Origin: Zygnema circumcarinatum SAG 698-1b | Taxonomy: Eukaryota > Plantae > Zygnematophyceae | Length of the DNA: 64,000 nucleotides | NCBI GenBank assembly: GCA_037447605.1 | Contig: CM074815.1 | Span: forward strand, 1,054,001-1,118,000 | Direction: 5' to 3' | In this document: positions 24,126 to 49,505 of the stretch, piece after piece | How the letters are laid out: every line of letters begins with the position of its first letter | Position numbering within the stretch: the stretch's first letter is position 1 | Translations under genes and position numbers: made by a program | The notes under the pieces: generated by a model | Database searches by the model: none | What the model was told of the DNA's origin: nothing | What the model saw: the letters and a program-made list of their open reading frames with translations, nothing else

Positions 24126-24740
24126 TTCCACACTGGATTAAGTCTCCTTTATCAGCATGAGAGCAGTGCTCAACTTATTTACTTGGCTTGGACCCGTCAG
24201 TCAGATCAACTTTTGTCAATGGACGTATCTTAAGTTGAAGGGCCGTCTTGTGCGAGACTCATCACTTGAAGATGAGATGTTTCCTATCGCAATAGTGAAA
24301 GGAATCCCTTTGCATGGATGAGGTCATGCATGAGTCATGTATGGCGGGCATGTGGCACGTGCGAATGGGACATCATTCGAGTGTTCAACGCGGTTTCACA
24401 ACTACACTTTTCATGGACGGACATAAAGTTTCCATACGCGAACAATATTTGACATAAGACTCTTGAGTGAAACATGCAAGCAAAGAGTTTCAAGTGACAA
24501 AAACCTGTTATGGCCTATCGGCGATCGCTTTCAAGGAAGGGGGTATGAGCTTTATTTCCGCAGTAAGCGACCACGCGCACAGCCCACACACCCTCCCTCG
24601 CTGTGGACCGCGTCCGTCGCCGCTTGTGTGGGGCTCTGGACGCGTCGGTGGCGGGGGTCAGCAGGCAGGGGTCTTTTCGGGTTAGCATTGTTTGAAGTTT
24701 ACATTTGGAAAAAAAACATTAACATCCCTCACCTCGCCTT

Positions 24741-24857
24741 GGTGCGATCATACCTAGGCTACTACGCCGGATCCCATCAGAACTCCGGAACTCAGCGCCT
24801 GTGGGCCGAAATAGTACTGGGATGGGTGACCTCCCGGGAAGTCCCGGTGTCGCACCC
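24741..24857 (+). rRNA. 5S rRNA-derived copy A, near full length (gene or pseudogene)
   Basis: GGTGCGATCATACC...CCGGATCCCATCAGAACTCCG...AGTACTGGGATGGGTGACCTCCCGGGAAGTCCCGGTGTCGCACCC. Helix I (GGTGCGA/TCGCACC) can pair. A TTTT tract follows at about +8. Confidence 0.88.
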
Positions 24858-24924
24858 ATCAACCTTTTGCTGTTCCACTTTCCAACCGCGATCGATCAAG
24901 AACCAAGGATCATTTTCCGCTCAG

Positions 24925-25380
24925 GAAAGTGACGTGGCGGCGCTTGAGTGGCCGCAGCACGTGCACGTCGTCGTCGTGGAACGCGGCCGCGAGGTGGGTT
25001 TGTCCTGAAGCGGTTTTTCTATCTGCCCGCAAAGTTGAGGCAGGACGGCAGGCGGCGGCGGTCGCGGCGGGCCAAGGTTCCACAGTTCGGACCAGTGGAT
25101 CGGCAACCATTGGACAACCATTGGATGGCAATGGTTGGACGTCTACTGGTTGGCAACCAGTCGAATGGTTGTTTCGGTCCGCAACCACTGGTTGGCAACC
25201 AGTCGACTGGTTTGGAACCAGTGGATGCCACTGGTTGGCAACCAGTCGAATGGTTGTTTCGGTCCGCAACCACCGGTTGCCAACAAGTCGACTGGTTTGT
25301 CTAATGGTCCGATCTGTGCAAGGTTCCGAAGGTCGGGAACCAATCAGCGCGCGCCCGCCCGCGATACTTCATGCCGATAC
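24925..25380 (-). repeat. Repeat module homologous to 48365-48575 / 49295-49503, interrupted by a CAACCA(C/G)TGGTTG-type palindromic array (about 25100-25300)
   Basis: Shared blocks GTCGTCGTGGAACG..CCGCGAG, TTGTCCTGAAGC.GTTTTT, TCTGCCCGCAAAGT and CCAATCAGCGC.CGCCC.CCCGCGATA.TTCA.GCC, in inverted orientation relative to 48-49 kb. Confidence 0.75.
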
Positions 25381-25437
25381 GGAGCCCGCGATACTTCATG
25401 CCGATACGGAGCCCGCGATACTTCATGCCGATACGGA
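25357..25437. repeat. 27-bp tandem repeat x3 (GCCCGCGATACTTCATGCCGATACGGA)
   Basis: Three perfect consecutive units. Confidence 0.95.
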
Positions 25438-26512
25438 GCCAGCGATGAGCGCCGCCTGAGGGCCAGTTTCCATCAGCCCGTTATTCCGACGTGGCGTCGT
25501 AATGGACGACGACCCATGGGTTCCATGAGGCCGTTTCCACCAACGTGGCGCCGACGTGGCTGCCACGTGGTAACGAGGCCCCGTTCCCCAGGACGGTCCG
25601 AAGAAGGTGGTGTAACGCCATTACGACCATTCGCGTGCCGCCACGTGGCTACCAAAGATACGCCAGCGTGCGACTGCCACGTTGGCTGGAAGCCGTCAAC
25701 GCACGGTGACCGCCGGTCGTAGTCGCAGGTCGCTTCAGCGCCGAGGAAACTTCCGAAGGTGCAGCCATGGCTGCCAACTTATCTGGAAAACCACGAGGAG
25801 AAGCCCGAGTACCTGCGAACGGACAACGGGCGTTTCATGAGTCAGTCAGCCAAAGGGCGTAGAAGCTCGTTGCAGGAGGGAGGGCTGCAGAGTTAAGCTC
25901 TGGCACTTAACCCTAGAATAGGGGATGAGCACGGAGGGGGCTCTCTTCCCATTCTCGCCTTAGGATTAGGGTTTGGAGACGGCTCTGGAGCATGCCGGAA
26001 GGGGGGGGGGTGTGTCCCTTTACTTCTCGTGCCGATGGAGATTTTTTGTTAGAGGGAGGAGGGAGATCGCACTCTATGAAGGTCTAATGGTTGTGTCGCT
26101 GCTACTCCGCGCTTTAGAAGCAATTGATTAGGGTTGTAATTATTATTATTCTTTTTGTTTAATTAATTTGAGTACGTGATTGGCAATTTTTCACTTTCAG
26201 ATTTTTGCTTCCATTCTCTTGGATGGCTTTTTCTAATGATGCTTGTGTTTTGGAGAGGAAAAAAACGAAATTGGAGTGGCTTTGCGTCATCAAAGCCAAT
26301 GGCTAAAAAATGAGGGAAAAATAAAGGGAAAGAAGAAAGATTGAGGAAGGGGTAAAGAAATAGAGGTGTGCATAGAAACCATTGCCTCTTTGTTTTTGTT
26401 TTTCGAAAATGATTTTTTTTCGCTTTATCTTTGCCATTTATTGTCTGTTTGTGTGCCTTTGTAGTCTGTAGTTGTTTATGTAATAATTTTTCCGTAGGGT
26501 TGTATGTAATTC

Positions 26513-27008
26513 GCAAGAAGCAAGAAGCAAGAAGCAAGAAGCAAGAAGCAAGAAGCAAAAAGCAAAAAGCAAAAAGCAAAAAGCAAAAAGCAAAAAGCCA
26601 GAAGCCAGAAGCCAGAAGCCAGAAGCCAGAAGCCAGAAGCCAGAAGCCAGAAGCCAGAAGCCAGAAGCCAGAAGCCAAAAGCCAGAAGCCAGAAGCCAGA
26701 AGCCAGAAGCCAGAAGCCAGAAGCCAAAAGCCAGAAGCCAGAAGCCAAAAGCTAGAAGCCAGAAGAAGCCAGAAGCCAGAAGCCAGAAGCCAGAAGCCAG
26801 AAGCCAGAAGCCAGAAGCCAGAAGCCAGAAGCCAGAAGCCAGAAGCCAGAAGCCAGAAGCCAGAAGCCAGAAGCCAGAAGCCAGAAGCCAGAAGCCAAAA
26901 GCCAGAAGCCAGAAGCCAAAAGCCAGAAGCCAGAAGCCAAAAGCCAGAAGCCAGAAGCCAGAAACGAAAAGCAAGCAGCAAGCAGCAAGCAGCAAGAAGC
27001 AAGAAGCC
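26513..27008. repeat. Heptamer satellite (AGAAGCC)n with AGAAGCA and AAAAGCA variants
   Basis: About 70 seven-base units read directly. The open frames (SQKPEAR / LASGFWL) are by-products of the repeat. Confidence 0.97.
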
Positions 27009-28120
27009 TCTTGACAACAAAGAGAGAAATCAGCCAATGGAGAATAGACATACGTGTCTGTCTATGGCGGAAACACGACCAATCAGACAGAGCTGAGCTT
27101 TGAAACATTCCTGACAGCAGCCAGACTCATTCTGGCTCTAGCACTACTTTTCAAGATTAATGTATCAACTGTGCAGTAATGTGCCTTGATGCGGAATTAG
27201 CAAAAAATGGAGCTCAGTGTCTGCAAGCACGTAATTACTTTCGAATGCAGCCCCTGAACGTTCTCAAGGTGCAGGTGCAGGAATGGATTGAGCACTTAGT
27301 GGCGTCGGGGGACAAAACAGACTTCCCTCGAAATGTATTTTCTCTCACAGTCGTGAATGGGGGGCCATACACAATTGTGATTTGTAATGCTTTAGCTCAC
27401 CCGTTCAACATACATATCCTCTCAATTTCTCAGTAATGGATTCAGCTGAACTTGATCTTCATGCTCTTTGTTGGAAACAATTCAGAAGTTGTTCCATGTG
27501 TACCTGCTGTTGAGAAAGTACATCACCGAGCACAAGATGGCTTACGAACGAGAGTGCCCAATTGCTGGTGTGCAGATTATGAAGGCACCAGCATTAGTGG
27601 AGCATTAGTGGAGCACCAGCAACAAGAGGGCTCTTCGATCCATACTGTTGCCGGAGAGTGTTGCTAGTACTACCAAACCTGGGAGAAGACGACGCAGAAA
27701 GGGAACGGAAGCCTCCGGCCGTGGAATTGCGAGGCAAACGCCGCGAATGACGTTGCCGCGAAAGGTAGGGAAAGGAGGGGACGAGAAGGGAGGGGGGAGG
27801 TGGCGGCTGCAGTGGCGGCGTCCGTCGCCTCCTGCAAACCCTAAAAAATTGTCGACGGTGACGCGCGTACGGTAACCGCCGTGGGCCACGGCGGACGCTT
27901 CAAATCGTGCACGTGGCGATCGCTGATTGGAAAACGGCGTTTTGATGGAACTCGTCATTTTATCTACAAAACGGCGTCCTACGTGGACCGTAATGAGCTC
28001 GTTACGAAACGGGCTGATGGAGACTGGCCCTGAGTCCATTCGCTTCAGCACCAGCGAAAGTTTGCGTCGAGCGATGCGAGCTCGATCGCGTGTTGGAAAG
28101 TGGAAAAGCAAAAGGTTGGT

Positions 28121-28216
28121 GGGTGCGACACCGGGACTTCCCGGGAGGTCACCCATCCCAGTACTATTCCGGCCCACAGGCGCTTAGCTGCGGAGCTCTG
28201 ATGGGATCCGACGTAG
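28121..28216 (-). pseudogene. 5S rRNA-derived copy B, lacking the 5' ~20 nt
   Basis: Reverse complement reads CTACGTCGGATCCCATCAGAGCTCCGCAGCTAAGCGCCTGTGGGCCGG...GTCGCACCC. It shares ~40 bp of 3' flank with copies A and C. Confidence 0.88.
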
Positions 28217-28529
28217 GTTAAGGCATTCTAATTACAATTATAAATTTAAAATCCTCGAGGAACCAATGGGCCGCCGAAAAAAGTACTGCCGTTTGTACCG
28301 TACGGTCCTTTCACCGAATGTGGCCGGCAGGAGCGGGACCGTTCGATCTAGGTGGAACCGGATCGATGAAACATCAGCCGTCGGATGGCCGACAGCGGCG
28401 CGGGGGGTCGCAGCCGTACGATACGAGGCGATTTCGACGCACGAGGCTACTGTATATACATACGGTGGTGGTGAGAGCGGCACAGCTTGGAGAGCTTCAA
28501 AATGAATGGAGGGGGGGGAAGGGGGGGAA

Positions 28530-28700
28530 GGAAATTTCATTGAACTCACAATGGCGAGGCCATTAAATGTACATAGACAAAAGCATGATGTGGAACCACG
28601 AGGGACTGGTCGCAAAGGTCCGAAACACCTTAGAACGAAGCTAAGAGCTGAAAACTACGCCTAGGCACAACAACGCAGCCCTAGAAGCAGCCGCGATGGA
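28530..28700 (+). repeat. Dispersed module (CATTGAACTC.C.ATGGCGAGGCCAT.AAATGTACA...)
   Basis: Related sequence at about 33130-33290, 47105-47150, 47765-47810, 48720-48765 and 50615-50740. Confidence 0.7.
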
Positions 28701-29365
28701 GGAGGGAGCGGCGGAAGTCCACCGACACGGTCACCAACAAACGCAGCACGCCGAGGGCGATGCCCGGGACTAGGGTTGGGTTCAACTTTGAACACGCAAG
28801 GTCCAAACTTTTTCGATTGAAGAAAACGAAACGTTTAAAAGAAAAAGTTCAACGACTCAACACGTTAGGTCGCACGTGTGGATTCTAATTTTTGCCACGT
28901 TGGTTCCGTGCGATTCGAGGGATCCGGTTGACCCGAACTCCAATTTTTGTACTGTACAACTCTTCCCGCGAGCCGAGCAACAATTTCTGTACGAACAACC
29001 GGATCCACGCGCTTTGCGATCCGCTAAAATCTTATTGTTGATCGGTGGACCCAAGGATCACTCAAATTGAACACGAACGATAATTAATTGTTCAATGTTC
29101 AATTGGTTCTCCATAAAAATTGTATTGAGAAAAAAAAGTTAGAAATTCTTTTCTCGTTTCTCAAAATGCACCGTGTTCACAAATATATGGTTTTTTTTTG
29201 GAGAAACCGTTTTTTAATTTTTTTTTTTGAGAAGCCAAAATCTTTAATTTCTTCAAGCGTGAAAGTACAGATTAAAAATGTTCGAACTTTAAGATGTAAA
29301 TTACATTATGGTACAACATAAATTATTAAACCAACTATCTCATTATTTCCCGGGTGTTCGAATTT

Positions 29366-30930
29366 CTAAACGCCTACATCTGTCACTTTACAGCTTTGGT
29401 CTTTCACTGTTTGCGAAGTGATGTCTATGTCCACATCGCAGCGCGCGTTCACCTGTGACAGCCAAACAGGCGCAACAACAACAAGGACGAGTCAGAATCT
29501 GAGGGAGGGGAGGGAGNNNNNNNNNNGGAGGGAGGGAGGGAGGGAGGGAGGGAAAGAGAGAGGCAGCACCAACCTTAACTGTTGGCGATGATATGCCCCA
29601 AATGTCAGCGGCTCCCTTAACCATAATCCGGCTCTGCACGAAGCAACAGTTTGGCTGTCAGTCCCCGACCCACATCATCAAAGCACCACTCGCGCTATTC
29701 AGTCATTGCAGCAGCAACTGCCAATAAAGCTTTTCTTTGAAACCTGCAGTTTCGCCAGGCCAATGAGGAATCGAACTCTCAGAAGATGGCTGAAGCATAA
29801 AGGGGTGACCGACACCTACCACGAGTGAGATGGTTCCGCCGAGGAACGACGACAGGAAATCAGAAGCCAAGGGGCCCGAGATTTGGGCATCCATGGCCAG
29901 GTCACCAAGCGTGCTGTACGTCTCTCGAGACCCCACTTTGAACGCCGGCAGCTGCATGCCAACATGGCACGAACATACATGAGATCATCATGTCCATACA
30001 TATAAGCAACGATCAAGCAAACGCGCCTTTTCGACTTTTTATAATAGATGAATACTTACAGTGCTATTGCCAATAGAATGATCCTTGTAGAAGATGGCAG
30101 CTCGCACGCTCTTAACATTCAACGAGTACTTGTTCCGATTCTCCACAGTGACGTTGTATGAGAGGACTCCCATGACCCTGACGAGTGTGGCCGAGTCATT
30201 ATTGAATTGGCTTAGGAGGTCCTGCAGGCTGCTGTCCGTGACGGGCGAGGAGACGTTCAGAGAGCGAATTCCTGTAACGTTGACGGAAACGGTAGGCTCC
30301 TGCCAGGTCACAGGGAGCCCCTTCTTTCAGCCCATGCAAAAAAAAACGTTTTTTTTTCTGGACTGATGCATCGGAACTGAGCTAGGGAGTGGGCGAAGGA
30401 GAGGGAGAGGAACAGGGAGCGGAAGCGGGAGAGGTAACCTGAGAGGGAGCGGAACGGGAGAGGGAGAGGGAGAGGAAGAGGGAGGGGGAGAGGGAGTGGG
30501 AGCGGGAGAGGAGGAAATGGAAAGGACGAGAGTGAGAGGAAAAGATAGAGTGAGAGGGGGGACGGGGTAAGCCTCTTGACCTTGGGCTTGAGCACGAGGT
30601 AGAGCACAAGCACAGTGATTCCCAGCGTCAAAAGCAGCAGCACCAGGAAGCAGCAGAGCCAGCAGCACACGCGCCCCGGAGTACACCTCCGCCGCCGCTC
30701 CTGCGCCATCCATGCATGCATCCATGGCAGAGTGAGCCATGGCCATCCCATGCCATGCCCTGAGGGCATGCGTGCAGGCATAAACTGCAAAGCCAAAGGT
30801 CTGAACAAAGGCAAGGAAAAAGCTGAGTCAGGCGACGGGAGGCAGCGGCGGAACCCACCTCTTGCACTGCTACTGTAGTGTACGGCCCGGCATTGCCCTT
30901 GGAAGGGGGATAGGGCGGGGGGTTCTCCAT
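29366..30930 (-). CDS. NDR1/HIN1-like (LEA_2 domain) membrane protein, multi-exon
   Basis: MENPPPYPPS...; Cys-rich TM segment CCWLCCFLVLLLLTLGITVLVLYLVLKPK; LSYNVTVENRNKYSLNVKSVRAAIFY; LPAFKVGSRE; DIWGISSPTVK; final exon VNARCDVDIDITSQTVKDQSC, stop TAG at 29366-29368. Confidence 0.82.
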
Positions 30931-31374
30931 CAAGATCTAAACAAACCACCCTTATCGCGAACGCTGCAGCCTTAGCCTTGCTTCTTTTTTGAGGTCTGAA
31001 AGGCCTCTTAAGTCGTCTCCGAATTGTGCAGCAGAGCGCGCGGAAGAGCTGTGAGCGCAGCGCCAATCGCCACCCTCCCTCCCTTCTATGTTATTTATTC
31101 TCCCTCCCTCTCTCCCTCTCTCCCTCTCTCCCTCTCCCTCTCTCCCTCTCTCTCTGTGCGACGCGCCCCGTGTTGGAGGGAGGACCTCCCCAGCGCGCCC
31201 ACGCGGCGACGGGGCCTTCCCGGAAGGTGCGCGGAACGCGCACTGTACGGCAGGGGAGAACAGTTGACCATGACACGTGGACCGGTCACTATGTGCCACA
31301 TGACCCAAAGTCGGCCAGGATGGACCCGGCCGACGGCGGGCGTCAAACCGGGAGGGGTGCGCCGGGCCGGCAAG

Positions 31375-31725
31375 GTGCCCGGGCGGGATTTTTTGTCGTA
31401 TCTGGATTGGACAGGTGGCGATAACGGACAAGGACGGCGGGACGGACGGCGGACCCCGACCGCGGTCGCGGTCGCCGTTTCGTACGGCGAATCCGGGCGC
31501 GAGGCTTATACAAGGTGACTTTCACTGTCCCTAAAGAAACAAAAACATGCGCATGGTTGTTGCTGCTGGCTGGCATCCATGCATGCATGCGGTGGGCCTT
31601 AATCGGCCCGCGGGTCATCCACAAGACGACAAACTGGCTCCGATGACGCGCTCGCTCGCTGTACGGCAAATCCGTCGTATGAGCCTGTCCAATTAAAATA
31701 CGACAAAGTCCCCCGCCCGATGCCT
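31375..31725. mobile_element. Possible MITE with degenerate ~35-bp inverted termini
   Basis: GGGCGGG....TTGTCGTAT....TTGGACAGG (about 31381-31417) versus CCTGTCCAA....ATACGACAA....CCCGCCC (about 31684-31719). No TSD seen. Confidence 0.45.
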
Positions 31726-32194
31726 AGCTGGCGAACGCTTCAGTCTGATCAGACATGGCCGATTTTATGACACGTGGCACAACATGAATGGCCCACACGG
31801 CGGTCATTGGCATTATTTTGTACGGCCGAATTCGTATTTTGTACGAATGGTTCGAAGAAGAAGTTTCTACGAAGCAGTCCCACGGTCAACCGAGTCACAA
31901 CCGCGACGCGACCGCCTGCCCGTCCGTATATGTCGGCCGTACACAAGTGTACACCACACCGCGATTCCCGGAAAGTGCTGCGGTCTGCTGCCGACACCTG
32001 GCGGCCACTCCACTCCGCACGTATGAGGATTATCCCAAAGCCAGAGGAAAAGCCCACGCGTTTGTCGCGACAAGCCACGCGGCAGTCAACGGGACTCGGA
32101 AGTCCCTACCCTGTACGGCCAGTGGCCGCGTGGCAACAAGGCGCGAATCTATGCGCGGCCGGTGACACGTGCGGGGACCGCGGCGGCGCGTTCC

Positions 32195-32426
32195 GATTGG
32201 TCGAGGACGGAGGGGCGGTGCCGTACGAGGACGGCCGTCACGGTTACCGCCGGTCGGTTACCAGCGGTCGGTTACTAGCGGTCGCGATAACCGAGGGTTC
32301 AGTCAGTGTACGGCACACTTTATCGTCTTTGGATTGTGATACGATATGACTCCCGATACGATACATTACAATACGATACAGGGGTCCGTGTGCGACGCCC
32401 GACATTCCGTTGATCCGATCGAATAG
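32195..32426 (-). repeat. Dispersed module, inverted homolog of 46270-46455
   Basis: Shared CTATTCGATCGGATC, GTCGCACACGG, AAGTGTGCCGTACACTG, GTGACGGCCGTCCTCGTACG and CCAATCGGAA. Confidence 0.8.
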
Positions 32427-32451
32427 AAGTGGCGCGAGGGATGATGATGTC

Positions 32452-32723
32452 GAGGGAGAGGGATGGTGGGAGAGGTAGATGTCAACCTTGGGTAGATCGA
32501 GAGTGCTGAGCAAGCGAACCACGAGCTTGGGGGGAAGCACCGGATAGGAGTATGCGAGGGTGTCTCGAACAAAGGAGAACGGCAGGGGGTGGTCGACAAT
32601 CACATGGTAGGGGGCAGCGCGGTGCAGGGCAAGGAGGCGATCAGATGTTTCCTTGGCTTCGTGTTCAATTAGTGTGTGTACAAATATCTGAAGGAGGGGG
32701 GTGATTCGAAGGCAGAAATGGTC
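32452..32723 (-). pseudogene. Captured MED23 fragment (copy of 43436-43707: most of an exon plus ~35 bp of the next intron)
   Basis: Translates DHFCLRITPLLQIFVHTLIEHEAKETSDRLL...LDLPKVDIYLSHH versus gene DHFCLRIIPLLQIFVHRLIEHEAMETADRLL...LDLSKVCIYLSHH. About 18 substitutions in 272 bp by eye. Confidence 0.93.
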
Positions 32724-32765
32724 ATATGTAACAGTGGAGCGTACAAGTAGTGTGACCATCCATAA

Positions 32766-33110
32766 CTTCAATTTGGGCATGCTTGAAATTCTTTCTAGTA
32801 AAAAAGTGCGTTACACATCCTCAAACAAATGCTCCCTCTGCACTGTGCTTCGACGTGTATACATGTTCCTGTCCTTACTATTTGATGTCTGGAAAATCAA
32901 ACAGAAAAACATCTCTGCACCTCAAGGGTGGTTTGACAAGAGACACAGAAACGAGTGGAATTAACGGTCCGCGGTTCAACAGCCCTAAAGCTACCAAAGC
33001 ACGGGCAGAGCGTTGCAAAAGAGTCAGAATTATTAAGTTCACTGCTTACCTTAAAAACGAGATGCCAGAAACAGGCGGCGACAATCATAGTCGGAAGCAC
33101 CACATTGGTG
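32766..33110 (-). pseudogene. Captured fragment of the fatty-acid-hydroxylase gene (copy of 51502-51846: exon 3 end plus intron)
   Basis: VLPTMIVAACFWHLVFK followed by ~285 bp of colinear intron sequence in both places. Confidence 0.93.
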
Positions 33111-33443
33111 GAAGGCTTAATGCAATTATAGATGTGGCATTGGTCTCACGATGGCGATGCCATCAATGTATATGGACAAAATCACCAGGGGAACCACAAG
33201 GAACTGGTCACAAAGGACCTAAAGTCACAAGAAAAGAGCTACGCCTAAGTTCAACAACGCAGCCGTCGAAGCAGCCACGAGTTAGGCTTCTAGTAACTTT
33301 TCATCGCATCGAATATGGACACTAAAGTGGAACATTATGGCATACCAACATCAACATGCGAAGTGGCCGAATTGAGAAAGGTGGGAAAATGATCCTCGGT
33401 TCTTGATCGATCGCGGCTGGAAGGTGCAAAAGCAAAAGTTCGT

Positions 33444-33550
33444 GGGTGCGACACCGGGACTTCCCGGGAGATCACCCAACCCAGTATTACTCCGGCCCAC
33501 AGGCGCTAAGCCGCGGAGTTCTGATGGAATCCGGCGTAGTAGCCTAGGTA
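33444..33550 (-). pseudogene. 5S rRNA-derived copy C, lacking the 5' ~11 nt
   Basis: Reverse complement reads TACCTAGGCTACTACGCCGGATTCCATCAGAACTCCGCGGCTTAGCGCCTGTGGGCCGG...GTCGCACCC. It shares ~60 bp of 3' flank with copy A (...CGCGATCGATCAAGAACC.AGGATCATTTTCC). Confidence 0.88.
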
Positions 33551-33993
33551 AACACGATTACTTAAACAGCTGTGAAAGTCTAATAACCATAATCTAGCGC
33601 GAAACGGCCGTAAAGCGAGTTGAAGACGCGCGTGTTGTGTTCGTGGGGCATTGGGCGCTCGCTCGTGGTCGGTTAGCGGCATGGATGGATGGATGGATGG
33701 ATTGATGGATTGAGGGATGGATGGCCATGCGCAGCAGCGACATGGGTCCATTTTCACTCTAAGTGCGAGCATGCGGATGGGCGCGGCAGCGCCGCGACGG
33801 AGGCCGGCCCCGACGTATGGCATCGGCATCGTCCCCCCTGTGTACGATATATTGGACATCGAATCGATATCTCGATACGCAGGAGCTCCCCTGTCTCCTC
33901 CCTTCCCGAGCTCCAGCTGGCCATGGCGCGCTTGCCTGCCTGCACCGCAGTTGGGCGCTCTCTATGGTAGGGCGAGAGAGGGAGGTAGCGGGC

Positions 33994-36900: not shown

Positions 36901-39161
36901 CTACTTACAACTCAGAGCTGAGACCCCACCCAACCTCTTCCCAACCTTTCCTTCCACTACTGTCGATAAAAAGGCATCCATCCCCCCCCTCCCCTCTGCC
37001 TGCTGGTTTGCGCCGTGCAGCTACCGTCAGACTGTCTTCCCTCAGACGATGCCGCCTCCTCCTCCTCCTCCTCCTCCTCCTCCTCCTCCTCCTTCTTCCT
37101 AGAGGTGGAGTCCCGCCGGCGGCGCATGCAGCGGTGCATGGAGGCGGCGGACGGGCACCTCCGCGGGCCGACCTTCGCCACGCTCCGCCTCGCGCCGCTC
37201 ACCTACAAAGGGGCCGCGGGGGAGCCCCTGCACTGGAAGGTGCTGGCCTGGGCTTTGTCGAACTATGTACGCAGGATGTATGTATGTATGTATGTATGTA
37301 CGCATTTTGTAGCACTTTCATGAAGGGAGGAAGTGTTAAGGATTCAGTTTCGGTGTTCTCTATAGTTAGCTTCGAGCTAGGATGGCTGTAACTCCTGAAC
37401 CCGAAACCTTGAAACCCTAAACCCTCAATCCTGAACCCTGAACCCCACACCCTGTATTCTAAACTTTACACCCTGAACCCTAAACCCTGGACTCTAAGCC
37501 TTAACCCCGAATCCTAAACAGTGAACCCCAAACACTCAATCCTGTAAACTTTAAACCCTGAACCCTGAACCCTTAACCCTAAACCATCAAACCCCGAGCC
37601 CTAAACCTTGTAACCGAAACCCGAAACCTAAACCCTAAACCCTGCCCCCCCCCCCCCCCAGGCCGTCCCCCCTGGCAGCCTCGCGTGGCGGCGCGGCCTG
37701 CGGTCCCTGGGCCACGCGCTGCGGTGCGGGCCGAGGGCGGAGTGGTGGGCGGGGGCGCTGCGGCACCCCCCGCGCTGGGAGGGCCACCCGCACACGGCCA
37801 ACCTGCCGCCCGCCCTCTCCCCCAACCCGGTGTTCCCGCACGCCATGCTGGTGGAGGCCGTCGTGGAACGCATCGTGGAGCTCATGCGGCCGAATGTAGC
37901 AGGTACTGTCTGTCTATCTATCTTCACAGTCTATTGGAAAGTGGGGAAAACACAGTGGGAGCAATAAACTTTAAACCACCACTTTTTTCTACTCCTGTTT
38001 CTGTGGAGAATCGCCATCTCTTCTCGCGTTAGCTTGTTCTGATGCACGCATTCTCAAACGTGCATGGCAGCATCTCCCGAGCAGAGCGAGACGGCGGTTG
38101 AAGCAGGACGGTGGCAGGAGTGGCTGACCTTCGCGGACATGTTCTACTACGCGGTGCGCCTCGGGCTGCTCGACTTTCAGGACCTCGTCGACGCGCTCGC
38201 GGAGCGGTTCAGGGCGGAGGGCCGCCCGCGGTCCAACCACGTCACGTGGCTACTCGCACAGGTCTCAAGGGCTGAGGCCACAGCCATGGCGCTGCAGAAC
38301 GGATCGCCGCAGAGGGTGGGTGGGTGGGCACCTGCCGTTTGGAAGCACGCTTGAGTGTATGGCTCAATGGAGGGGGAGAGGGGGAGAGGGGGAGAGAGGG
38401 AGAGGGGGCGAGGGGGGAGGGGGAGGAGGAGGGGAGGGGGAGGAGGGGAGGGGGGAGGGGGGAGGAGGGGTAGGGGGGCGAGGGGGGGCGAGGGGGGGCG
38501 AGGGGGGGAAGGTGTGGGAGGGGGGGAAGGGGGGGAGGGTTGGCGAGGGGGGGCGAGGGGGGGCGAGGGGAGAGGAGGGAGAGAGGGAGAAAGAGAGAGG
38601 GTGGGGAGGGACGAGGGAAGGGGGAAGGGGAAGGGGAGGGGGGGGGGTTGTGTGGGAAACCGGGGGATGGAGGAGGGGGGTGGGGGAAGGGGGTGAAGGG
38701 ATAAGTGAAGGGAGGATATGGGAAGCAGGATGTGATGGAGGATGCGAGAGCAGATGGATTGAGGGAGGGGGGAGGGTGTCTGCTGTGACTGTTTTTTTAT
38801 GTACTACATCAGAACTAAACACATGGAGAGAAGGCTGAGATTCCCAATGTTGGGTGTGTTGCAATGTGCAGCTGCAGAGCACCTTGCAGAAGATCCTTTG
38901 GTTCCATACAGAGAGTCGGGGAGAGGAGGGGCAGCCCCCCTCTGCATGGAATCTCCTTTTGGAGTTCATGGGCAGCTGCCAGATTCTCCGCCTTTGGAGT
39001 CTGAACAAGCGGCTGTTGGAGGAGCAGGTGGGAGTGAACGACTACAACGTCAAGAGCAAGCAGCTCAACGAGTGGTGGCAGACCACTGTCAAAGGTGGCT
39101 GCCTACCCACGTAGAGTGGATAGGAGAGAGGGTGGGAAAGAGGGGAGAGAGCGAGAGAGAG

Positions 39162-39197
<36 letters not shown>

Positions 39198-42100: not shown

Positions 42101-45100
42101 CTACATAGGCTCCTTCTAGGCTCCGGACTCCCATAGACTCCTTATAGCCTCCCTATGTAAGCTCTCGATAGCCTCCCTATAAGCTTCTTCAATAGCCTCC
42201 CTACAGGCTCCCTATACACACTTCTTAACTAGGCTTCTTTTAGGTTCCTTCTAGGCTCCCTATTGGCTCCTTGCTTCCCTTACACCCCCCCCCTCCCTCC
42301 NNNNNNNNNNCCCTCCCTCCCTCCCTCCCTCCCTCCCTCTCCCTCTCGTGCAGGTGCAGGTGGAGAGCAAGGCCGCCCTGGGCGCCCTGCTGGTCGCTGC
42401 CACGCAGGGCCTGACCGCCTTCGTGTGGGGGCCCGAGGCGCTGCCCTTCGACATCGTCATGCTCGCACTCATCGACCGCGACGACACGCCCTCCTTCAGC
42501 CTGCGAGTCGTGGTCAGTTGCTTCAATGTGGAAATCCCACCTCTGTTTGCGTTTATTAAGAGAGGGGAGGTGCATTATACAGCGGTCAGTGCTTGTATGG
42601 ATGGATGCATGCTTGCATGGATGGGTGGATGAATGCGTGGGTGGATGCATCGTTTTGTATTCGTGCATGAATAGAGATGTAAAGATATGGGTGCCTGGAT
42701 GATGGACGGATGCACGCATCATGAATAACGCTGGACAGATAAACGTCTAGACGAATGAACGAACGAACGTATGGATGACTCACCTTATAGAAACACAACA
42801 TAAACATCACCCATCAACAACCCAACCCCTAAACCAATCCCTTCCTTTGCCTGCTGCTTGCCTGCCTTCTTTCCTGCCTGCTTCCCTGCCTGCCTGCTTC
42901 CCTCCAGGTAGGTCTGGTTTTGGACCGGGTGGAGGTTCGGCAGCGCGCACAGCCGTACTGCGCTGCGAGGGGGCAGCAGCGGTCCGCGGAGCATTGGGCT
43001 GCGCCCGTACCCGCCCCCGCGCCGGAGGGCGCACAGGCGCTGGGCCCACACCTCGCGGGCCGGGACGGGTGGGCGCACACCCGAGACACGTTTGGAAGGG
43101 GGGGCAAGCAAGAACAAGGAAGGGGGTCTAAGGGGCAGTGGGATAGTGGGGGATAGAAGGGCTGTAATCGAAGGAAACTGTTTAGTTAGTGGGTTTTGTG
43201 GGTTCAATTGTGGGGTTTGATATGGGGAGTTTTGGGAGTTAAGTGAGTTGAGAGGTTATGTTTGATGGAAGCTTGTTATGGTAATGGTGAAGATTTTTGT
43301 AACTTTTTTCAAAATTGTGAATAGTCATGTTGGCTGTGAACCTGGACTCTTAACGGAGTAAAAGGCATTCTTCTAATGAGGACATTTTTCTGTTTTTTTT
43401 TTGTTTTTTTTTTTTGCAGATATCCCATATTCTTCGACCATTTCTGCCTTCGAATCATCCCCCTCCTTCAGATATTTGTGCACAGACTAATTGAACACGA
43501 AGCCATGGAAACAGCTGATCGCCTTCTTGCCTTGTACTGCACTGCCCCCTACCATGTGATTGTCTACCACCCCCTGCCGTTCTCCTTTGTTCGAGACACC
43601 CTCGCATACTTCTATCCGGTGCTTCCCCCCAAGCTCGTGATTCGCTTGCTCAGCACTCTCGATCTCTCCAAGGTTTGCATCTACCTCTCCCACCATCTCT
43701 CTCCCTCTCCGTTGCTTCCCACCCATATTCATTTCAGAAACAGAGTCTTCATCGAGCTTGGTGTTTTGTATATTTTGCAATGCTTACGAATAATCCTGCG
43801 ACTTTATGGCTGCTGGGTGTTTGCTCTAAGTGGCTACTAGTCCGCAAGCTTGAAACCGAAATTCTGTTCAGTTTGTATATCCACATTGCTCACGGAGAGG
43901 ACCCTTCCCTTCCTCTCTTACGCAGATTCCGTTCTCTATCTCATTTCTCAGCCATATGGGCAGTCCTGGCAAGCTTCCTGGGGCCGACTACTTCTTCAGT
44001 CTCCTTACCACTCTCGCACTGCAAGTCATCCCCCCTCTCTCTCCCCCCTCCCGCTCCTCTATGACCTCTCCCGAGAGCCCTCCCTCTGAGCCTGATGCTG
44101 CAAGCCCTTCTCCGAGCCCTCTGGGAGTTAGCAAACCGTTCTGTGAACACATGGACACTGCTCCCTATGTCCACCTTCTCCTAGAAACCGCTGCGGTAGA
44201 ACTCCTCTCCCTCCCTCTCCCTCTCGTCGACGGAGTGAAGACTACCGTCCCCTACCAAGTCGTAAAAATGCTCCTCGCAGCAGCAACGCTTGTACCTTCT
44301 CCGAATCACATACATTCCAGCAGTTCTGCTCCCTCTCCCACTATTCCTCCCTCTTCCTCTCCCACCCCTGGAAGTGCAGGAACAGCCGCAGCAGCGGCCC
44401 TTTTTGCGGACCTACCACCACCTACCGCTCCCTCCGGGGGGGGTTCAGGAAGGAAGAGTGCTCCCTCTCCCCCACTAATGGCACAGGCTTGTGGAGTGCT
44501 GCTAGCACAGCTTCCCACCCCCTTCCATACAGCCCTATATGCTGAGGCTGCAAAAGTTTTCCTGGCCTGCCCGTGGCTGGTAGACCCCAACCGCAGCAAG
44601 GAAGAGGCAGCGCTGCTGTGGGAGCGAGTGGTAGTAGATCCGACTTGGGCAGCAGGAAATGACATGTGCTCAGAGATAGGTAATACCCTCTCTGCAATAT
44701 GGGGACGAGAGGTAGCTCAGTTTCACTAGATTTGAGGCTATAATGTACCCGAGAGATCAACTTCTTGTGTATGATTACATGGGGATGGTGCAGGAAATCT
44801 GATTGCACTGCTCCATGCCGCCATGGCTGCTCTTCCCTTTGAGTGGCTGGAGGGAGCGCTCGCAATAGTGACAGCCCAGAGGCCTCTCCGTACGGCCGTA
44901 CAGCTCCGGCTGTGCTTCCACCTGCTGGGGCCCCTGGTTCCGCGCACAGCGGTTTACCGGCCCCTCTTTGTGAAGGCAAGCTGCCACTTTCTGACCCTCT
45001 GTACTAGCAAATCAGCAGAATTTATTTGCTAGATGTGATGGATGTGGTGAGGTAACGGTGAACATTGCAAACATGCGACATTCACTCATTAGTGTGCGAA

Positions 45101-45669
45101 AAGTTTTGGCTCATAGGATGTGTTTTATGGTCCCGTTGAGAGGCTCATGCAGGAAGGACCTGGAATTTGTCCACAATGGTTTTGTTCGATGTATTGACAT
45201 GAGATGCTGCACGTGGCTGCAGACTCTCTCTCTTCTCTTTTCGGCTCTCGCTGATGTGTTTGGAGTGGATTCCGACGCAGCGATTACTGGACCAGCCACG
45301 CTCATCTCAGACCTTGTCGACTTCATGTGAGCATCTCCTCATCGCCCTCAAATCGACCAAACAGACCAAACCAAGAGTGAATAGACTTTGACTCTGACTG
45401 ACTCTCCAGTTTGCGGTTAACCTCTCTAATCAAAAGCATTATTGGCATTATTATCCCTCCCCTCCTCCCCCTCTTGCAGGCACCATGCAGTGATGTTGGA
45501 GGCAGGCCCGGGCAGTAGTCGGCCGAGGGCAGAAACTCTCCTTGCGTGTTCTGAGGGAGCGGGTCGCCTCCGCCCCGACCTGCGCCTCTTGCTGCGCCAC
45601 CTCACCGCTGACCCCCACGTGTCCCTCTACGCGGCGAGCAGCGCCCGGCCGGGGAAGACCCCCTCGTAG
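33994..45669 (+). CDS. MED23: Mediator of RNA polymerase II transcription subunit 23, many exons
   Basis: Exons match recalled plant MED23 motifs: LLQRYLG, WQEWLTFADMFYY, RSNHVTWLLAQ, FSPEEVTQNAYALVDVLLH, PFDIVMLALIDRDD, YHPLPFSFVRDTLAYFY, LLAQLPTPFH, AALPFEWLEG, TLSLLFSALADVFG, HHAVMLEA...LRPDLRLLLRHL. The start codon assignment is less certain. Confidence 0.9.
37395..37644. repeat. Degenerate interstitial telomere-like array (CCCTAAA / CCCTGAA variants) in a MED23 intron
   Basis: About 30 degenerate AAACCCT-type heptamers ending AAACCCTAAACCCT just before the intron acceptor. Confidence 0.85.
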
Positions 45670-45705
45670 TGGGCGACCGCTGGGGGGGGGCGCGTGGCAG
45701 ATGGG

Positions 45706-45771
45706 GGGTTCAGGGTTTTAGGGTTTTAGGGTTTGAGGGTTTGAGGATTTGAGGATTTGAGGGTTTGAGGG
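45706..45771. repeat. Degenerate telomere-like array, G-strand (TTTAGGG / TTTGAGG variants)
   Basis: GGGTTCAGGGTTTTAGGGTTTTAGGGTTTGAGGG... about 37 bp after the MED23 stop codon. Confidence 0.8.
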
Positions 45772-46479
45772 CTTTTCACGATGAGGCGTTGCTCTCATGC
45801 ATGCGAGTGTTGAATAAGCTGTGTTCTATATTTGCGGGAGTGGAAGTAGGTAGCTGTTCAAAGGTAGACAGTTTTGGGAAAGGAAAGGAGAGTAGTCGTA
45901 GAGATATGGCAGGCGATCATCATCCCAAGGATGGCGGCCGGCTTGCTCACTTTTTTTGCATGTAACTGTGTGTTCGGATTTCGAAAGCCAAAAAGTCAGT
46001 AAGCCGATTTTTTTTTTTTTTTTTTAAGCACTGCACAACGCGCCACTTTCGTTAGGGCAGGTCAGTCATGGCCAAACATGTCCAAATCGATATCGTACGC
46101 TTGCCGGACGTACTGTATTTCGCATTGGCTAGGTACAGTACGCATTTCGATACGGCTGGATTAGGCGGAGCCGCGGATCCCGACCCGAAATTCGTACACG
46201 AAAAAATGCCTTTTCGTAATACTGAATTCGGGAATTTCGAACGCTCCGCGCTAAGTCTGACCCCCCCTCCCCCTATTCGATCGGATCTAACGGGATGGCG
46301 TGGGTCGCACACGGTTCCCATGTATCGTATCGTATCGTCAATCAAATGAGCGTAATTTTGAAGTTGACAAGTGTGCCGTACACTGCGGTTGCCGGCCAGT
46401 AACTGTGACGGCCGTCCTCGTACGCGGCCACCCCCCCGTCCTCCGCCAATCGGAAGGTGCGACATTGCGACGGGACAAA

Positions 46480-46830
46480 ACAGAACAACGATTGCTAATG
46501 GTTCCAACCATACCATTGCCTGCGGTACGGTTGCAACCATTGGCAATGGTTTTCAATGTTGCCAACCAAACCATTGCCGCCGGCCCGAAACAACGATCGC
46601 CAACGGTTGGCAACCTTGGAATTGAAGGGCCGGTTGCCAACCATTGGCGATCGTTGTTTAGGGCCGGCGGCAATGGTTTGGTTGCCAATTGAAAACCATT
46701 GCCAATGGTTGCAACCATTGAATTCCAAGGGTTGCCAACGGGATTGCGATTGGGATTGCGACGGGACCGAAACAACCATTGCCACTGGTTCCAACCATTG
46801 CCGCCGGTCCCAAACAACCATTGCCGAAAG
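46480..46830. repeat. CAACCATTG/CAATGGTTG palindromic array containing a foldback (46531-46714, ~83-bp arms, 16-nt loop)
   Basis: 46531-46615 is a near-perfect reverse complement of 46632-46714. Confidence 0.9.
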
Positions 46831-46899
46831 GAGGCGTCCGATGTTCTTGCCTCGAAAGGGAAAAAGAAAAAAAATATTAAATGTTAACACGGTAGATGT

Positions 46900-47016
46900 G
46901 TTGCGATCATACCTGGGCTACTACGCCGGATTCCATCAGAATTCCGCAGCTAAGTGCCTGTGGGCCGGAATAGTCCTGGGATGGGTGACCTCCCGGGAAG
47001 TCCCGGTGTCGCACCC
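46900..47016 (+). rRNA. 5S rRNA-derived copy D (probable pseudogene)
   Basis: Full-length 5S pattern with several changes versus the in-window consensus (GGATTCC, AGAATTCC, TAAGTGCC, TAGTCCT, 5' GTTGCG). Followed by TTTT tracts. Confidence 0.85.
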
Positions 47017-47244
47017 ACACCTTTTACTCTTTTCTTTCATTTTTGGAAATGGTCAAACATCGACATCGATGGTGTGACCAATAATGTTGACATGAAGTGG
47101 AAACTTTCATTGAACTCGCGATGGCGAGGCCATCAAATGTACACATGGACATGAACAATGTTGACATTGTTCTTGAGGTGTTCTTGGCTGACGTCACAAG
47201 GTGACGCCTTGGCGGACTGCTTGTCTCGGCAAGCCGGTCCGGAA

Positions 47245-48362
47245 CAGCAATTGCCAATGGTTGGAACCATCGCCGCCCGACCGACACAACCATTGCCTAC
47301 GGTTGCAACCATTGGCAATGGTTTTCAATGTTGCCAACCATTGCCGCCCGCCGGCCCTTGAATTCCAATATTGCCAACCNNNNNNNNNNGGTTGCCAACG
47401 GGATTGCGATTGGGATTGCGACGGGACCGAAACAACCATTGCCACTGGTTCCAACCATTGCCGCCGGTCCCAAACAACCATTGCCGAAAGGAGGCGTCCG
47501 ATGTTCTTGCCTCGAAAGGGAAAAAGAAAAAAAATATTAAATGTTAACACGGTAGATGTGTTGCGATCATACCTGGGCTACTACGCCGGATTCCATCAGA
47601 ATTCCGCAGCTAAGTGCCTGTGGGCCGGAATAGTCCTGGGATGGGTGACCTCCCGGGAAGTCCCGGTGTCGCACCCACACCTTTTACTCTTTTCTTTCAT
47701 TTTTGGAAATGGTCAAACATCGACATCGATGGTGTGACCAATAATGTTGACATGAAGTGGAAACTTTCATTGAACTCGCGATGGCGAGGCCATCAAATGT
47801 ACACATGGACATGAACAATGTTGACATTGTTCTTGAGGTGTTCTTGGCTGACGTCACAAGGTGACGCCTTGGCGGACCGCTTGTCTCGGCAAGCCGGTCC
47901 GAAACAGCAATTGCCAAATGGTTGGAACCATCGCCGCCCGACCGACACAACCATTGCCATCGGACCGAAACAACCATTGCCTACGGTTGCAACCATTGGC
48001 AATGGTTTTCAATGTTGCCAACCGTTGCCGCCCGCCGGCCCTTGAATTCCAAGATTGCCAACCATTGGCAATAGTTGTTTAGGGCTGGCGGCAGTGGTTG
48101 GCAACGTTGAAAACCATGGCCCATCGTTGCAACCACTGCATTCCAAGGTCGCCAACCATTGCGACGGTACAAAACAAGACAACGATTGCCAATGGTTCCA
48201 ACCGTACCATTGCCTGCGGTACGGTTGCAACCATTGGCTATGGTTTTCAATTGGCAACCATTGCCGCCGGCCCTTCAATTCAAAGGTTGCCAACCATTGG
48301 CGATCGTTGTTTAGGGCCGGCGGCAATGGTTGCCAATTGAAAACCATTGCCAATGGTTGCAG
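47245..48362. repeat. CAACCATTG palindromic arrays flanking copy E, including a foldback at 48226-48361 (49-bp arms)
   Basis: TGCAACCATTGGCTATGGTTTTCAATTGGCAACCATTGCCGCCGGCCCT pairs with AGGGCCGGCGGCAATGGTTGCCAATTGAAAACCATTGCCAATGGTTGCA with one mismatch. An N-gap lies within the interval. Confidence 0.85.
47560..47676 (+). rRNA. 5S rRNA-derived copy E (appears identical to D)
   Basis: Same sequence as 46900-47016, with the same ~170-bp upstream flank. Confidence 0.82.
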
Positions 48363-48585
48363 AATCTCTAGGCGTGAAATATCGCGGGTGGGCGTGCGCT
48401 GATTGGCTCTTTCCGGGCGGACCTTGACCCGCCGCGACTGCGGCCGCCCTGCGCCGACTTTGCGGGCAGAACGAAAAACTGCTTCAGGACAATTCCCCCC
48501 TCGCGGGCCGTTCCACGACGACGCCGGTAAGGGCTACGGCCACTCACGCGCCGCCACGCCATCTGATCGGGCAGANNNNNNNNNN

Positions 48586-48630
48586 AGTCCTGGGATGGGT
48601 GACCTCCCGGGAAGTCCCGGTGTCGCACCC
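48586..48630 (+). rRNA. 5S rRNA-derived copy F, 3' part only (cut by assembly gap)
   Basis: AGTCCTGGGATGGGTGACCTCCCGGGAAGTCCCGGTGTCGCACCC directly after an N-run, with the same 3' flank as D and E. Confidence 0.8.
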
Positions 48631-49505
48631 ACACCTTTTACTCTTTTCTTTCATTTTTGGAAATGGTCAAACATCGACATCGATGGTGTGACCAATAATG
48701 TTGACATGAAGTGGAAACTTTCATTGAACTCGCGATGGCGAGGCCATCAAATGTACACATGGACATGAACAATGTTGACATTGTTCTTGAGGTGTTCTTG
48801 GCTGACGTCACAAGGTGACGCCTTGGCGGACTGCTTGTCTCGGCAAGCCGGTCCGGAACAGCAATTGCCAATGGTTGGAACCATCGCCGCCCGACCGACA
48901 CAACCATTGCCTACGGTTGCAACCATTGGCAATGGTTTTCAATGTTGCCAACCATTGCCGCCCGCCGGCCCTTGAATTCCAATATTGCCAACCATTGGCA
49001 ATAGTTGTTTAGGGCTGGCGGCAATGGTTGGCAACGTTGAAAACCATTGCCCATCGTTGCAACCACTGCATTCCAAGGTCGCCAACCATTGCGACGGTAC
49101 AAAACAAGACAACGATTGCCAATGGTTCCAACCGTACCATTGCCTGCGGTACGGTTGCAACCATTGGCTATGGTTTTCAATTGGCAACCATTGCCGCCGG
49201 CCCTTCAATTCAAAGGTTGCCAACCATTGGCGATCGTTGTTTAGGGCCGGCGGCAATGGTTGCCAATTGAAAACCATTGCCAATGGTTGCAGAATCTCTA
49301 GGCGTGAAATATCGCGGGTGGGCGTGCGCTGATTGGCTCTTTCCGGGCGGACCTTGACCCGCCGCGACTGCGGCCGCCCTGCGCCGACTTTGCGGGCAGA
49401 ACGAAAAACTGCTTCAGGACAATTCCCCCCTCGCGGGCCGTTCCACGACGACGCCGGTAAGGGCTACGGCCACTCACGCGCCGCCACGCCATCTGATCGG
49501 GCAGA
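48586..49505 (+). repeat. ~0.92-kb tandem unit (5S 3' part, spacer, palindromic array, GC-rich module) duplicating about 47632-48575
   Basis: Near-identical sequence on both sides of the gap at 48576-48585. Confidence 0.85.

Follow-up and report, generated by a model that had tools for sequence, protein, structure and literature searches.

The window, by which we mean the whole 64-kb stretch of DNA analysed here, carries 5S rRNA sequences interspersed with protein-coding genes, namely an LSMT-like gene, MED23 and a FAF1/UBA gene. A search of the window with the Rfam RF00001 covariance model (gathering threshold of 38 bits) gave five full-model matches (1–120) above the threshold, copies A to E, and a sixth copy, F, was placed by alignment (Table 1). 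An earlier, sequence-only reading of this DNA had put A to E within 1–2 nt of the RF00001 boundaries, and its view that the copies derive from a real 5S gene is upheld. The T4 run that it reported is indeed retained in all copies in the flank alignment. Pairwise divergence among the copies is 6–10% and star-like, with private substitutions in every copy, which argues that the copies are old. Rfam found no large- or small-subunit rRNA in the 64-kb window, and an L-type (35S-linked) arrangement was therefore rejected. A copia reverse transcriptase is encoded in the window; no transposase was found in it. The assembly gaps at 29517 and 42301 lie within (GGGA)n microsatellites and touch no 5S copy.

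Table 1. Positions of the 5S copies, their flanks and the associated repeats in the 64-kb window.
Feature	Position	Strand	Remarks
Upstream motif of A	24708–24722	+	A-rich/TATA-like, GAAAAAAAACATTAA; D/E counterparts at 46865–46879 and 47525–47539
Copy A	24740–24858	+	RF00001, 85.1 bits; apparently intact solitary 5S rRNA gene
A/B/C-type 3' flank, A	24859–24918	+	Alignment, BLAST
Module X beside A	24930–25078	-	GC-rich, array spacer; 81% over 150 bp to 48421–48561, E = 1e-30
MITE	25081–25318		238 bp; inserted in the X-Y module beside A
Module Y beside A	25337–25375	-	CCAAT; 87% to 48371–48409
A/B/C-type 3' flank, B	28082–28122	-	Alignment, BLAST
Copy B	28123–28236	-	RF00001, 51.5 bits; 5S pseudogene
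Z repeat near B	28538–28696	+	Upstream of B by about 300 bp, in inverted orientation
Mosaic beside C	32186–33110	-	Inverted copies of nearby sequence (self-BLAST)
Mosaic piece	32186–32426		Resembles 46273–46460, left flank of the array
Mosaic piece	32452–32723		93% to 43436–43707, MED23 exon region
Mosaic piece	32766–33110		94% to 51502–51846
Z repeat near C	33138–33280	+	About 100 bp past the 3' flank of C, inverted relative to C
A/B/C-type 3' flank, C	33384–33444	-	Alignment, BLAST
Copy C	33445–33561	-	RF00001, 55.8 bits; 5S pseudogene
Tandem 5S rDNA cluster	46463–49505	+	Self-BLAST, gap test, module map
Third palindrome	46559–46688
Copy D	46899–47017	+	RF00001, 82.3 bits; full-length 5S
Copy E	47559–47677	+	RF00001, 82.3 bits; 5S sequence identical to D
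Spacer palindromes, two per unit	47985–48134, 48226–48361		Repeated at 48915–49064 and 49156–49291
Copy F	48586–48631	+	46 nt, 5S nt 74–119 (alignment); cut by an assembly gap
Fourth Z repeat	50618–50731	+	1.1 kb right of the cluster, without 5S

The description of all six copies as dispersed does not survive closer analysis: D, E and F belong to a single cluster of head-to-tail units with a common gene and spacer, assembled from three contigs that are separated by 10-N gaps (47380–47389 and 48576–48585). The unit is about 1.16–1.19 kb long, with the order promoter region, 5S, Z, palindromes, Y and X, and in each unit the 5S gene is preceded by an A-rich motif and followed by a T4 terminator. 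The end of the D contig (46972–47379) is exactly identical to the start of the F contig (48586–48993), a 408-bp suffix/prefix overlap, and D and F may therefore be the same physical copy. The middle contig (47390–48575; 1186 bp) comprises one whole unit and aligns collinearly, at 97.5%, with the two flanking contigs once these are merged, the E unit differing from the D/F unit by six mismatches and one 24-bp indel. Copy F had been listed as a partial copy. The 46-nt piece is there, but its cut is an artefact of assembly, as the overlap indicates, rather than a biological truncation. Read in this way, the cluster holds at least two units, with the true number and the unit-to-unit junction falling within the gaps.

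The spacer palindromes are near-perfect and about 140–150 bp long, with arms of 49–57 nt that are 87–98% complementary; folded as single-stranded DNA they have predicted dG values of -53 to -72 kcal/mol (z of -10 to -17). Forty of the 41 window matches to the CAACCATTGGC-type motif lie in the palindromes or beside A, against 1.5 expected by chance. The spacer modules occur in the cluster and beside A, B and C, and elsewhere in the 64 kb only as the Z repeat at 50.6 kb; an Rfam E-value scan of 49400–53000, around that repeat, was empty. Z is about 150 bp long, and the copy near B is 81% identical to the array Z (E = 5e-10) and 74% identical over 159 bp to the copy near C (E = 2e-22). Module Y beside A runs into a 27-bp tandem repeat of 3.3 copies (25357–25446, TRF). 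The three solitary 5S copies thus lie outside the array with array-type flanks, X-Y beside A and Z beside B and C. The orientation of the 5S of A relative to X-Y, and of B and C relative to Z, is opposite to the arrangement in the cluster. A precise test of a simple cassette inversion was not significant (P of 0.13–0.2), with a control scoring equally.

In copy A the 5S structure is complete, and both the upstream motif and the terminator are kept. The only non-canonical pair in its RF00001 alignment is the terminal pair of helix I, and it carries five private substitutions relative to the majority 5S sequence. The upstream motif (GAAAAAAAAYATTAA at about -33 to -19) is common to A and D/E: when the 45 nt upstream of A and of D were aligned locally, P was 0.008 against shuffles, and the BLAST homology between A and D/E begins at -31. 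The sequence-only reading had stated that the upstream flanks differ among A, B, C and D, which holds for B and C, where upstream alignments revealed no promoter-proximal homology, but not for A against D. Because the homology between A and D/E extends beyond the transcript start into promoter-proximal sequence, A is a paralogue at the DNA level, and the suggestion of copying at the DNA level can be upheld at least for A. The criteria applied for a functional Pol III 5S gene were intact helices, an upstream TATA-like element and a T-run terminator. By sequence, A and D/E carry the helices, the upstream element and the T-run, D and E with a U–C mismatch at the third helix I pair. We infer that A is a live RNA polymerase III gene.

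The X-Y module beside A is interrupted by a 238-bp MITE, the uninterrupted X-Y module of the array serving as its (paralogous) empty site. The element has terminal inverted repeats (TIRs; CACAGwTCGGACCA), of which these two are the only perfect matches to the pattern in the window, an 8-bp TSD (CAAGGTTC at 25073–25080 and 25319–25326) and a small non-coding body with CAACCAnTGG palindromes. An ARAGORN call of tRNA-Ala at 25157–25254 lies inside the element and lacks Rfam support. In its TIRs, its 8-bp TSD and its lack of coding capacity the element resembles hAT-like MITEs. It is the sole bounded element found among the 5S flanks and it carries no 5S; it is a passenger in the spacer and not the vehicle of the 5S gene.

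Copies B and C had been described as 5'-truncated at different points, and neither shows a clean truncation. B is scrambled over its first ~22 nt, neither helix I nor helix II is intact and many pairs are non-canonical, while nt 23–119 carry just two substitutions relative to the majority sequence. C keeps TGTT and lacks seven nucleotides (GCGATCA) from the 5' strand of helix I, where five of nine pairs are broken; it has seven further substitutions. Both retain the internal control region (roughly nt 50–97) and the T4 terminator, score about 30 bits below A and fall short in helix I and the upstream motif. B and C would accordingly be classed, from these sequence features, as probable dead copies.

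The 3' flank reported as private to A, B and C was recovered by alignment and extends over 37–60 bp: A and B are homologous to +37 (92%) and A and C to +60, with B and C 82% identical, against about 40% to D/E/F. BLAST with this flank matches at A, B and C alone in the 64-kb window. The T4 terminator lies at +7 to +10 and a second T4 at +53 to +56. The ends of the shared block differ by copy, at -31, about +1 and about +23 on the 5' side and at +37 and +60 on the 3' side; B and C keep about 135–180 bp of contiguous homology. The common flank of A and C stops 2 nt past the second T4 and C begins at about +1, which gives this pair a transcript-like shape. Flank alignment, together with inverted-repeat searches around A and C, identified no TIRs or TSDs bounding the 5S block, and a TIR transposon or MITE carrying the 5S was rejected given the differing block ends and the lack of bounding inverted repeats around A and C. 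The absence of poly(A), LTR and TSD noted previously also stands, none being seen in the aligned flanks.

Beside C lies a mosaic of inverted pieces with sharp edges and a 42-bp filler, the sources of which are 10–19 kb away (Table 1). Helitron or Pack-type elements were sought as a 5' TC and a 3' CTRR with a hairpin, or as TIRs with a 9-bp TSD. No bounding inverted repeats or TIRs were found for the mosaic, which is present as a single copy, where Helitron ends cannot be called.

The reading that we favour, as probable though by no means secure, is that A, B and C are 5S orphons and that D, E and F form a minor tandem array, with no new mobile element needed. A, B and C would represent an older 5S subfamily marked by its own 37–60-bp 3' flank. 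They would be pieces of 5S repeat units, produced by local duplication and rearrangement of the DNA, each of which then decayed on its own course, by birth-and-death evolution. To judge from the anatomy of the locus only, the hairpin-forming spacer palindromes may promote fold-back or template-switch replication errors, or capture during break repair, and the inverted patchwork beside C fits this. Some observations count against orphons. At a divergence of about 10%, homology in B and C breaks off sharply outside a short block of ~135–180 bp, which needs real breakpoints near the gene in each copy; such close breakpoints at B and C would be equally expected from a mobile cassette or a retrocopy. 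The Z repeat without 5S at 50.6 kb suggests that Z may be an independent dispersed repeat and not strictly a spacer. The transcript-like shape of the A–C pair and the cassette-inversion test without significance weigh on the same side.

The sequence-only reading had instead proposed DNA-level mobilisation of 5S cassettes by an undescribed non-autonomous element; on this view the 5S and ~40–60 bp of 3' flank would be the cargo or core of a foldback, MITE-like, Helitron-like or Pack-type DNA element that inserts on either strand among genes. We consider this improbable, even though the 5S plus 37–60 bp recurs at A, B and C as a short block in otherwise different contexts and on both strands, with the cassette inverted relative to X-Y and Z in all three. 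C also borders a mosaic of captured gene fragments, such as Pack-type or Helitron elements make, and the hairpin-rich MITE-like DNA that accompanies 5S in the window likewise speaks for such an element. However, the ends of A, B and C are ragged, with no common termini and no TIR or TSD at any boundary, no transposase is present in the window, and the sole element with proper ends, the 238-bp MITE, is empty of 5S. Three of the six copies form an ordinary tandem array, all copies are embedded in pieces of one common 5S spacer, and 6–10% divergence points to old events rather than an active family. Alternatively, B and C could be RNA-mediated copies of an A-type Pol III read-through transcript, running from +1 past a leaky first T4 to the second T4 (about +56) and then reverse-transcribed or used as a repair template, with A as the DNA-level source type. 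The homology of C from about +1 (TGTT) to 2 nt past the second T4, the promoter-proximal homology that is absent in B and C and present in A and D/E, short copies with damaged 5' ends typical of retrocopies and the copia reverse transcriptase in the window are all consistent with this route. We nevertheless regard it as doubtful: neither a tail, A-rich or otherwise, nor a TSD is present, the homology of B ends at +37 and not at a T-run, and C has an internal 7-nt deletion instead of a 5' truncation. Of the retro-pseudogene features, then, C has the boundaries and the lack of promoter homology, and B does not end as expected. The Z repeats near B and C also suit remnants of DNA units better.

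A further reading, that in this alga a 5S cassette (the gene plus ~40–60 bp to the second T-run) is repeatedly copied to new sites on either strand without TIRs or TSDs, is in our view also unlikely. The copying could proceed by capture from an RNA or DNA template where forks break or stall, and the hairpin-rich 5S spacer would favour it; if true, 5S genes would be Pol III units that disperse themselves, a kind as yet undescribed in the green lineage. It is most improbable that all copies are a normal functional set of scattered 5S genes, free of any distinct history of duplication or rearrangement, in which the defects of B and C are tolerated variation. B and C do retain the internal control region and T4, but neither can form helix I, B cannot form helix II, both fall well below A in score, and both lack the upstream motif common to A and D/E.

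Dispersed 5S genes are known from Neurospora, Aspergillus and Schizosaccharomyces pombe, where, as here, single genes and pseudogenes of several variants lie among protein-coding genes; the alga differs in that it also has tandem clusters, whose spacer is long and structured. SINE3 and other 5S-derived SINEs, reportedly described by Kapitonov and Jurka in 2003, are likewise Pol III units of 5S origin found at many sites, and damage at the 5' end is common among them. The copies in the window are full 5S sequences with genomic 3' flank, A shares promoter-proximal DNA with D/E, and the flanks, as read and aligned, contain no LINE-related body, A-rich or simple-repeat tail or TSD, for which reason a SINE was rejected. 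Cassandra TRIM retrotransposons (Kalendar et al., 2008, as cited in PMC3692318) also disperse 5S-derived sequence with a Pol III promoter and terminator. They were rejected as well: such an element would have a short internal domain between two direct 5S-bearing LTRs that lie less than 1 kb apart, whereas no second direct copy occurs near A, B or C, and D/E/F repeat the whole unit in tandem. The Cassandra primer-binding site (TGGTATCAGAGC, up to two mismatches) has three matches in the window, all far from 5S, against 4.4 expected by chance. The earlier judgement that the copies are neither SINE3 nor Cassandra was thus correct, there being no tail, paired 5S-bearing LTRs, tRNA-iMet primer-binding site or TSD.

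The orphon concept (Childs et al., 1981, as cited in PMC3225859) and birth-and-death evolution of 5S families (PMC3123226) offer the closer likeness, with copies outside the array that carry spacer pieces, intact variants mixed with pseudogenes, independent divergence between loci and homogenized units within one cluster. The window differs in that the strays lie at most 22 kb from a minor cluster, in gene-rich streptophyte-alga DNA, and have the cassette inverted relative to the spacer. The formation of eccDNA from 5S arrays and its possible reintegration (discussed in PMC3225859) could similarly carry tandem 5S units to new loci at the DNA level, where they would later be seen as orphons, although such circles carry whole units or multiples, whereas B and C keep only the short block.

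According to Wicke et al. (2011, as cited in PMC3692318), the usual description for streptophyte algae and early land plants is of 5S genes in tandem arrays, often 35S-linked. The window, with a minor stand-alone 5S cluster and decaying stray copies in gene-rich DNA, is unlike the described arrays. Taken by itself it is mainly a correction, in that a new mobile element is unnecessary. If the same state were true genome-wide, the alga would be a plant-lineage example of 5S birth-and-death evolution and a natural case in which to study how hairpin-rich spacers drive local inverted duplications.

Scanning the entire window against Rfam returned five full-length 5S rRNA matches, all of them well above the gathering score. 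Together with the partial copy F, they confirm the positions of the 5S copies proposed in the sequence-only reading. The structure of copy A is complete, the terminal pair of helix I being the sole non-canonical one, and D and E have an additional U–C mismatch within this helix. Helix I is lost in both B and C. About 22 nt at the 5' end of B are scrambled; C, which had been described as 5'-truncated, instead retains the initial TGTT and lacks only the following 7 nt. The TTTT terminators are kept, as claimed earlier, with a T4 run 7–10 nt past the gene in all copies. Over 5S nucleotides 23–119 the inter-copy identity is 90–94% with a star-like pattern, and private substitutions are present in every copy (five in A, five in D, two in B in addition to its scrambled 5' end and seven in C in addition to its deletion); copy-specific variants include nt 49, 51, 54 and 70 in A and nt 34, 44, 57 and 77 in D/E. 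No copy has the look of a master gene.

Features of the window (window-relative positions; scores are from Rfam)
Feature	Position	Strand	Score (bits)	Remark
Copia-type reverse transcriptase	10-1302
Exon with Rubisco LSMT substrate-binding domain	22643-23068
5S copy A	24740-24858	+	85.1	solitary
MITE	25081-25318			beside A
5S copy B	28123-28236	-	51.5	solitary
Patchwork of inverted copies	32186-33110			beside C
5S copy C	33445-33561	-	55.8	solitary
MED23 exons	43376-44729
5S copy D	46899-47017	+	82.3	cluster
5S copy E	47559-47677	+	82.3	cluster
5S copy F	48586-48631	+		cluster; final 46 nt of 5S, directly after N run
FAF1/UBA-domain exon	56535-57452

The arrangement of D, E and F is revealed by the assembly gaps around them. 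The 408 bases preceding the gap at 47380 exactly match the 408 bases following the gap at 48585, and the 1186-bp contig between both gaps is collinear from end to end with the merged outer contigs, from which it differs by six mismatches and a single 24-bp indel. It follows that D, E and F, previously read as dispersed copies, make up one 5S rDNA cluster with its units in head-to-tail order. The cluster comprises at least two distinct units with a length of about 1.16–1.19 kb, each ordered as promoter region, 5S, module Z (about 80 bp downstream), two palindromes of ~140–150 bp, module Y and module X, where X, Y and Z denote GC-rich, CCAAT and ~150-bp repeat modules of the spacer. The truncation of F is an assembly artefact, and the matching sequence suggests that D and F may be the same physical copy. 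The gaps at 29517-29526 and 42301-42310 fall within (GGGA)n/(CCCT)n microsatellites, leaving all 5S copies unaffected, and that at 58013-58022 lies within a poly-G homopolymer; all three look like sequencing dropouts rather than joins between unrelated contigs. Interstitial telomere-like arrays in opposite orientations were also observed, namely a degenerate (CCCTAAA)n-like array of ~35 copies at 37394-37643 and (TTTAGGG)-like variants at 45705-45776, ~1 kb to the left of the cluster.

The near flanks separate the solitary copies from the cluster on the 3' side. The sequence-only reading had noted a 3' flank common to A, B and C and absent from D, E and F, and the identities bear this out: A and B are 92% identical up to +37 and the flank common to A and C reaches +60, 2 nt past the second T4 run, whereas past the first T-run the identity of D, E and F to this flank is only about 40%. 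Upstream, the flanks were said to differ throughout. This holds for B and C, whose upstream regions showed no detectable homology with one another or with A or D, but not for A and D: the motif GAAAAAAAAYATTAA is common to A and D/E at about -33 to -19 relative to the 5S gene start (P = 0.008 against shuffles), and the homology between A and D/E begins at -31 in BLAST. Metagenome scans with the A/B/C-specific junction and with a 35-nt lineage-specific segment of the 5S 3' part gave no match. A 27-bp block (GGGCCAGTyTCCATCAGCCCGTT) occurs downstream of A and B at unequal distances (25456-25482 and 28008-28034), amid abundant ACGT-core (G-box-like) motifs.

Further out, pieces of one common spacer are present at all 5S loci. 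Beside A, X and Y are found 70 bp downstream in inverted orientation (81% identity over 150 bp, E = 1e-30). Z is present ~300 bp upstream of B and ~100 bp past the flank of C, and in both places its orientation relative to the 5S is inverted. A fourth Z at 50618-50731 has no 5S within 1 kb. The + strand carries Z at each of the four loci, and the module may represent a short, independent dispersed repeat that has a conserved core of ~50 bp. A Z-like similarity seen by eye upstream of A was dropped, as BLAST did not recover it. A simple-inversion model, which equates the A-type unit with a cluster unit whose -31 to +14 segment is flipped, did not reach significance, a control scoring equally; the flip in orientation has thus been observed, but its breakpoints are not defined. 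With up to one mismatch tolerated, the palindrome motif CAACCATTGGC has 41 occurrences in the window, where 1.5 would be expected, and all but one of them (40 of 41) are in the cluster or beside A. The spacer palindromes have arms of 49–57 nt with 87–98% complementarity, and their folding energies as single-stranded DNA range from -53 to -72 kcal/mol (z from -10 to -17). Rfam found no further RNA genes in the 5S spacers, the palindromes giving only sub-threshold similarity to miRNA-precursor hairpin models.

One real transposon was found beside a 5S copy. A 238-bp element interrupts the X–Y module beside A, has terminal inverted repeats (CACAGwTCGGACCA) and is flanked by an 8-bp target-site duplication, CAAGGTTC; the uninterrupted X–Y site is found in the cluster. 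It is a MITE inserted in spacer DNA, contains no 5S and is not the vehicle of the 5S copies. A 98-nt tRNA-Ala (GGC) called by ARAGORN in its palindromic body (25157-25254) is a false positive, because Rfam has no tRNA match there. Beside C lies a 0.9 kb patchwork of inverted, sharp-edged copies from 10–19 kb away: the left flank of the cluster (71–83% identity), a segment of the MED23 exon region (93%) and, beyond a 42-bp filler, sequence from 51.5 kb (94%). The donor gene was identified as MED23 from Pfam and from land-plant homologues (Marchantia, Ginkgo and Camellia), in keeping with a streptophyte genome; its exon, searched alone and without joining exons, gave land-plant MED23 as top matches at 35–42% identity. 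Template switching and break-repair capture produce mosaics of this sort. No terminal repeats bounding the patchwork were found; this single copy may have been left by template switching or repair, or it may represent a Pack-type or Helitron-like carrier of gene fragments. A protein search with the LSMT-like exon gave no match. The 7-bp microsatellite AGAAGCC (~70 copies, 26516-27008) produces spurious long ORFs on both strands.

The best-supported explanation is a minor tandem 5S cluster accompanied by three orphons, A, B and C, that belong to an older subfamily of 5S units. The sequence-only reading favoured mobilization by an undescribed non-autonomous element; this is possible, but there is no structural evidence in its favour. 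The block common to A, B and C ends differently in each copy and is bounded by neither inverted repeats nor target-site duplications. The window encodes no transposase, its sole mobile-element protein being the copia reverse transcriptase at its left end. The same reading was right that the copies fit neither of the known 5S-bearing elements. Cassandra, a TRIM with 5S in its LTRs, is excluded, since A, B and C lack a nearby second 5S-bearing repeat in direct orientation and none of the 5S copies has a primer-binding site for the initiator tRNA in its vicinity. A 5S-derived SINE such as SINE3 is likewise excluded, as inspection of the flanks revealed no tail or LINE-like body. For B and C the chief alternative is that they are RNA-templated copies of a read-through transcript, in keeping with the block of C, which extends from about +1 as far as the second T-run and is without promoter homology; however, tail and target-site duplication are both absent and the homology of B stops at +37.

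Under the cluster-and-orphon explanation, A, B and C would have arisen by local DNA-level duplication and rearrangement followed by independent decay, as in birth-and-death evolution (PMC3123226). Fold-back or template-switch events could plausibly have been driven by the spacer palindromes, with their strong tendency to form hairpins. Orphons have been proposed to arise by reintegration of 5S eccDNA (PMC3225859), but such an origin predicts whole units, whereas the blocks here are 135–180 bp. The genome papers for Zygnema and Spirogyra make no mention of 5S organization. Linkage of 5S to 35S is the state described in streptophyte algae and early land plants by Wicke et al. (2011), as cited in PMC3692318, and a genome-wide 5S census in this alga would therefore be of some value.
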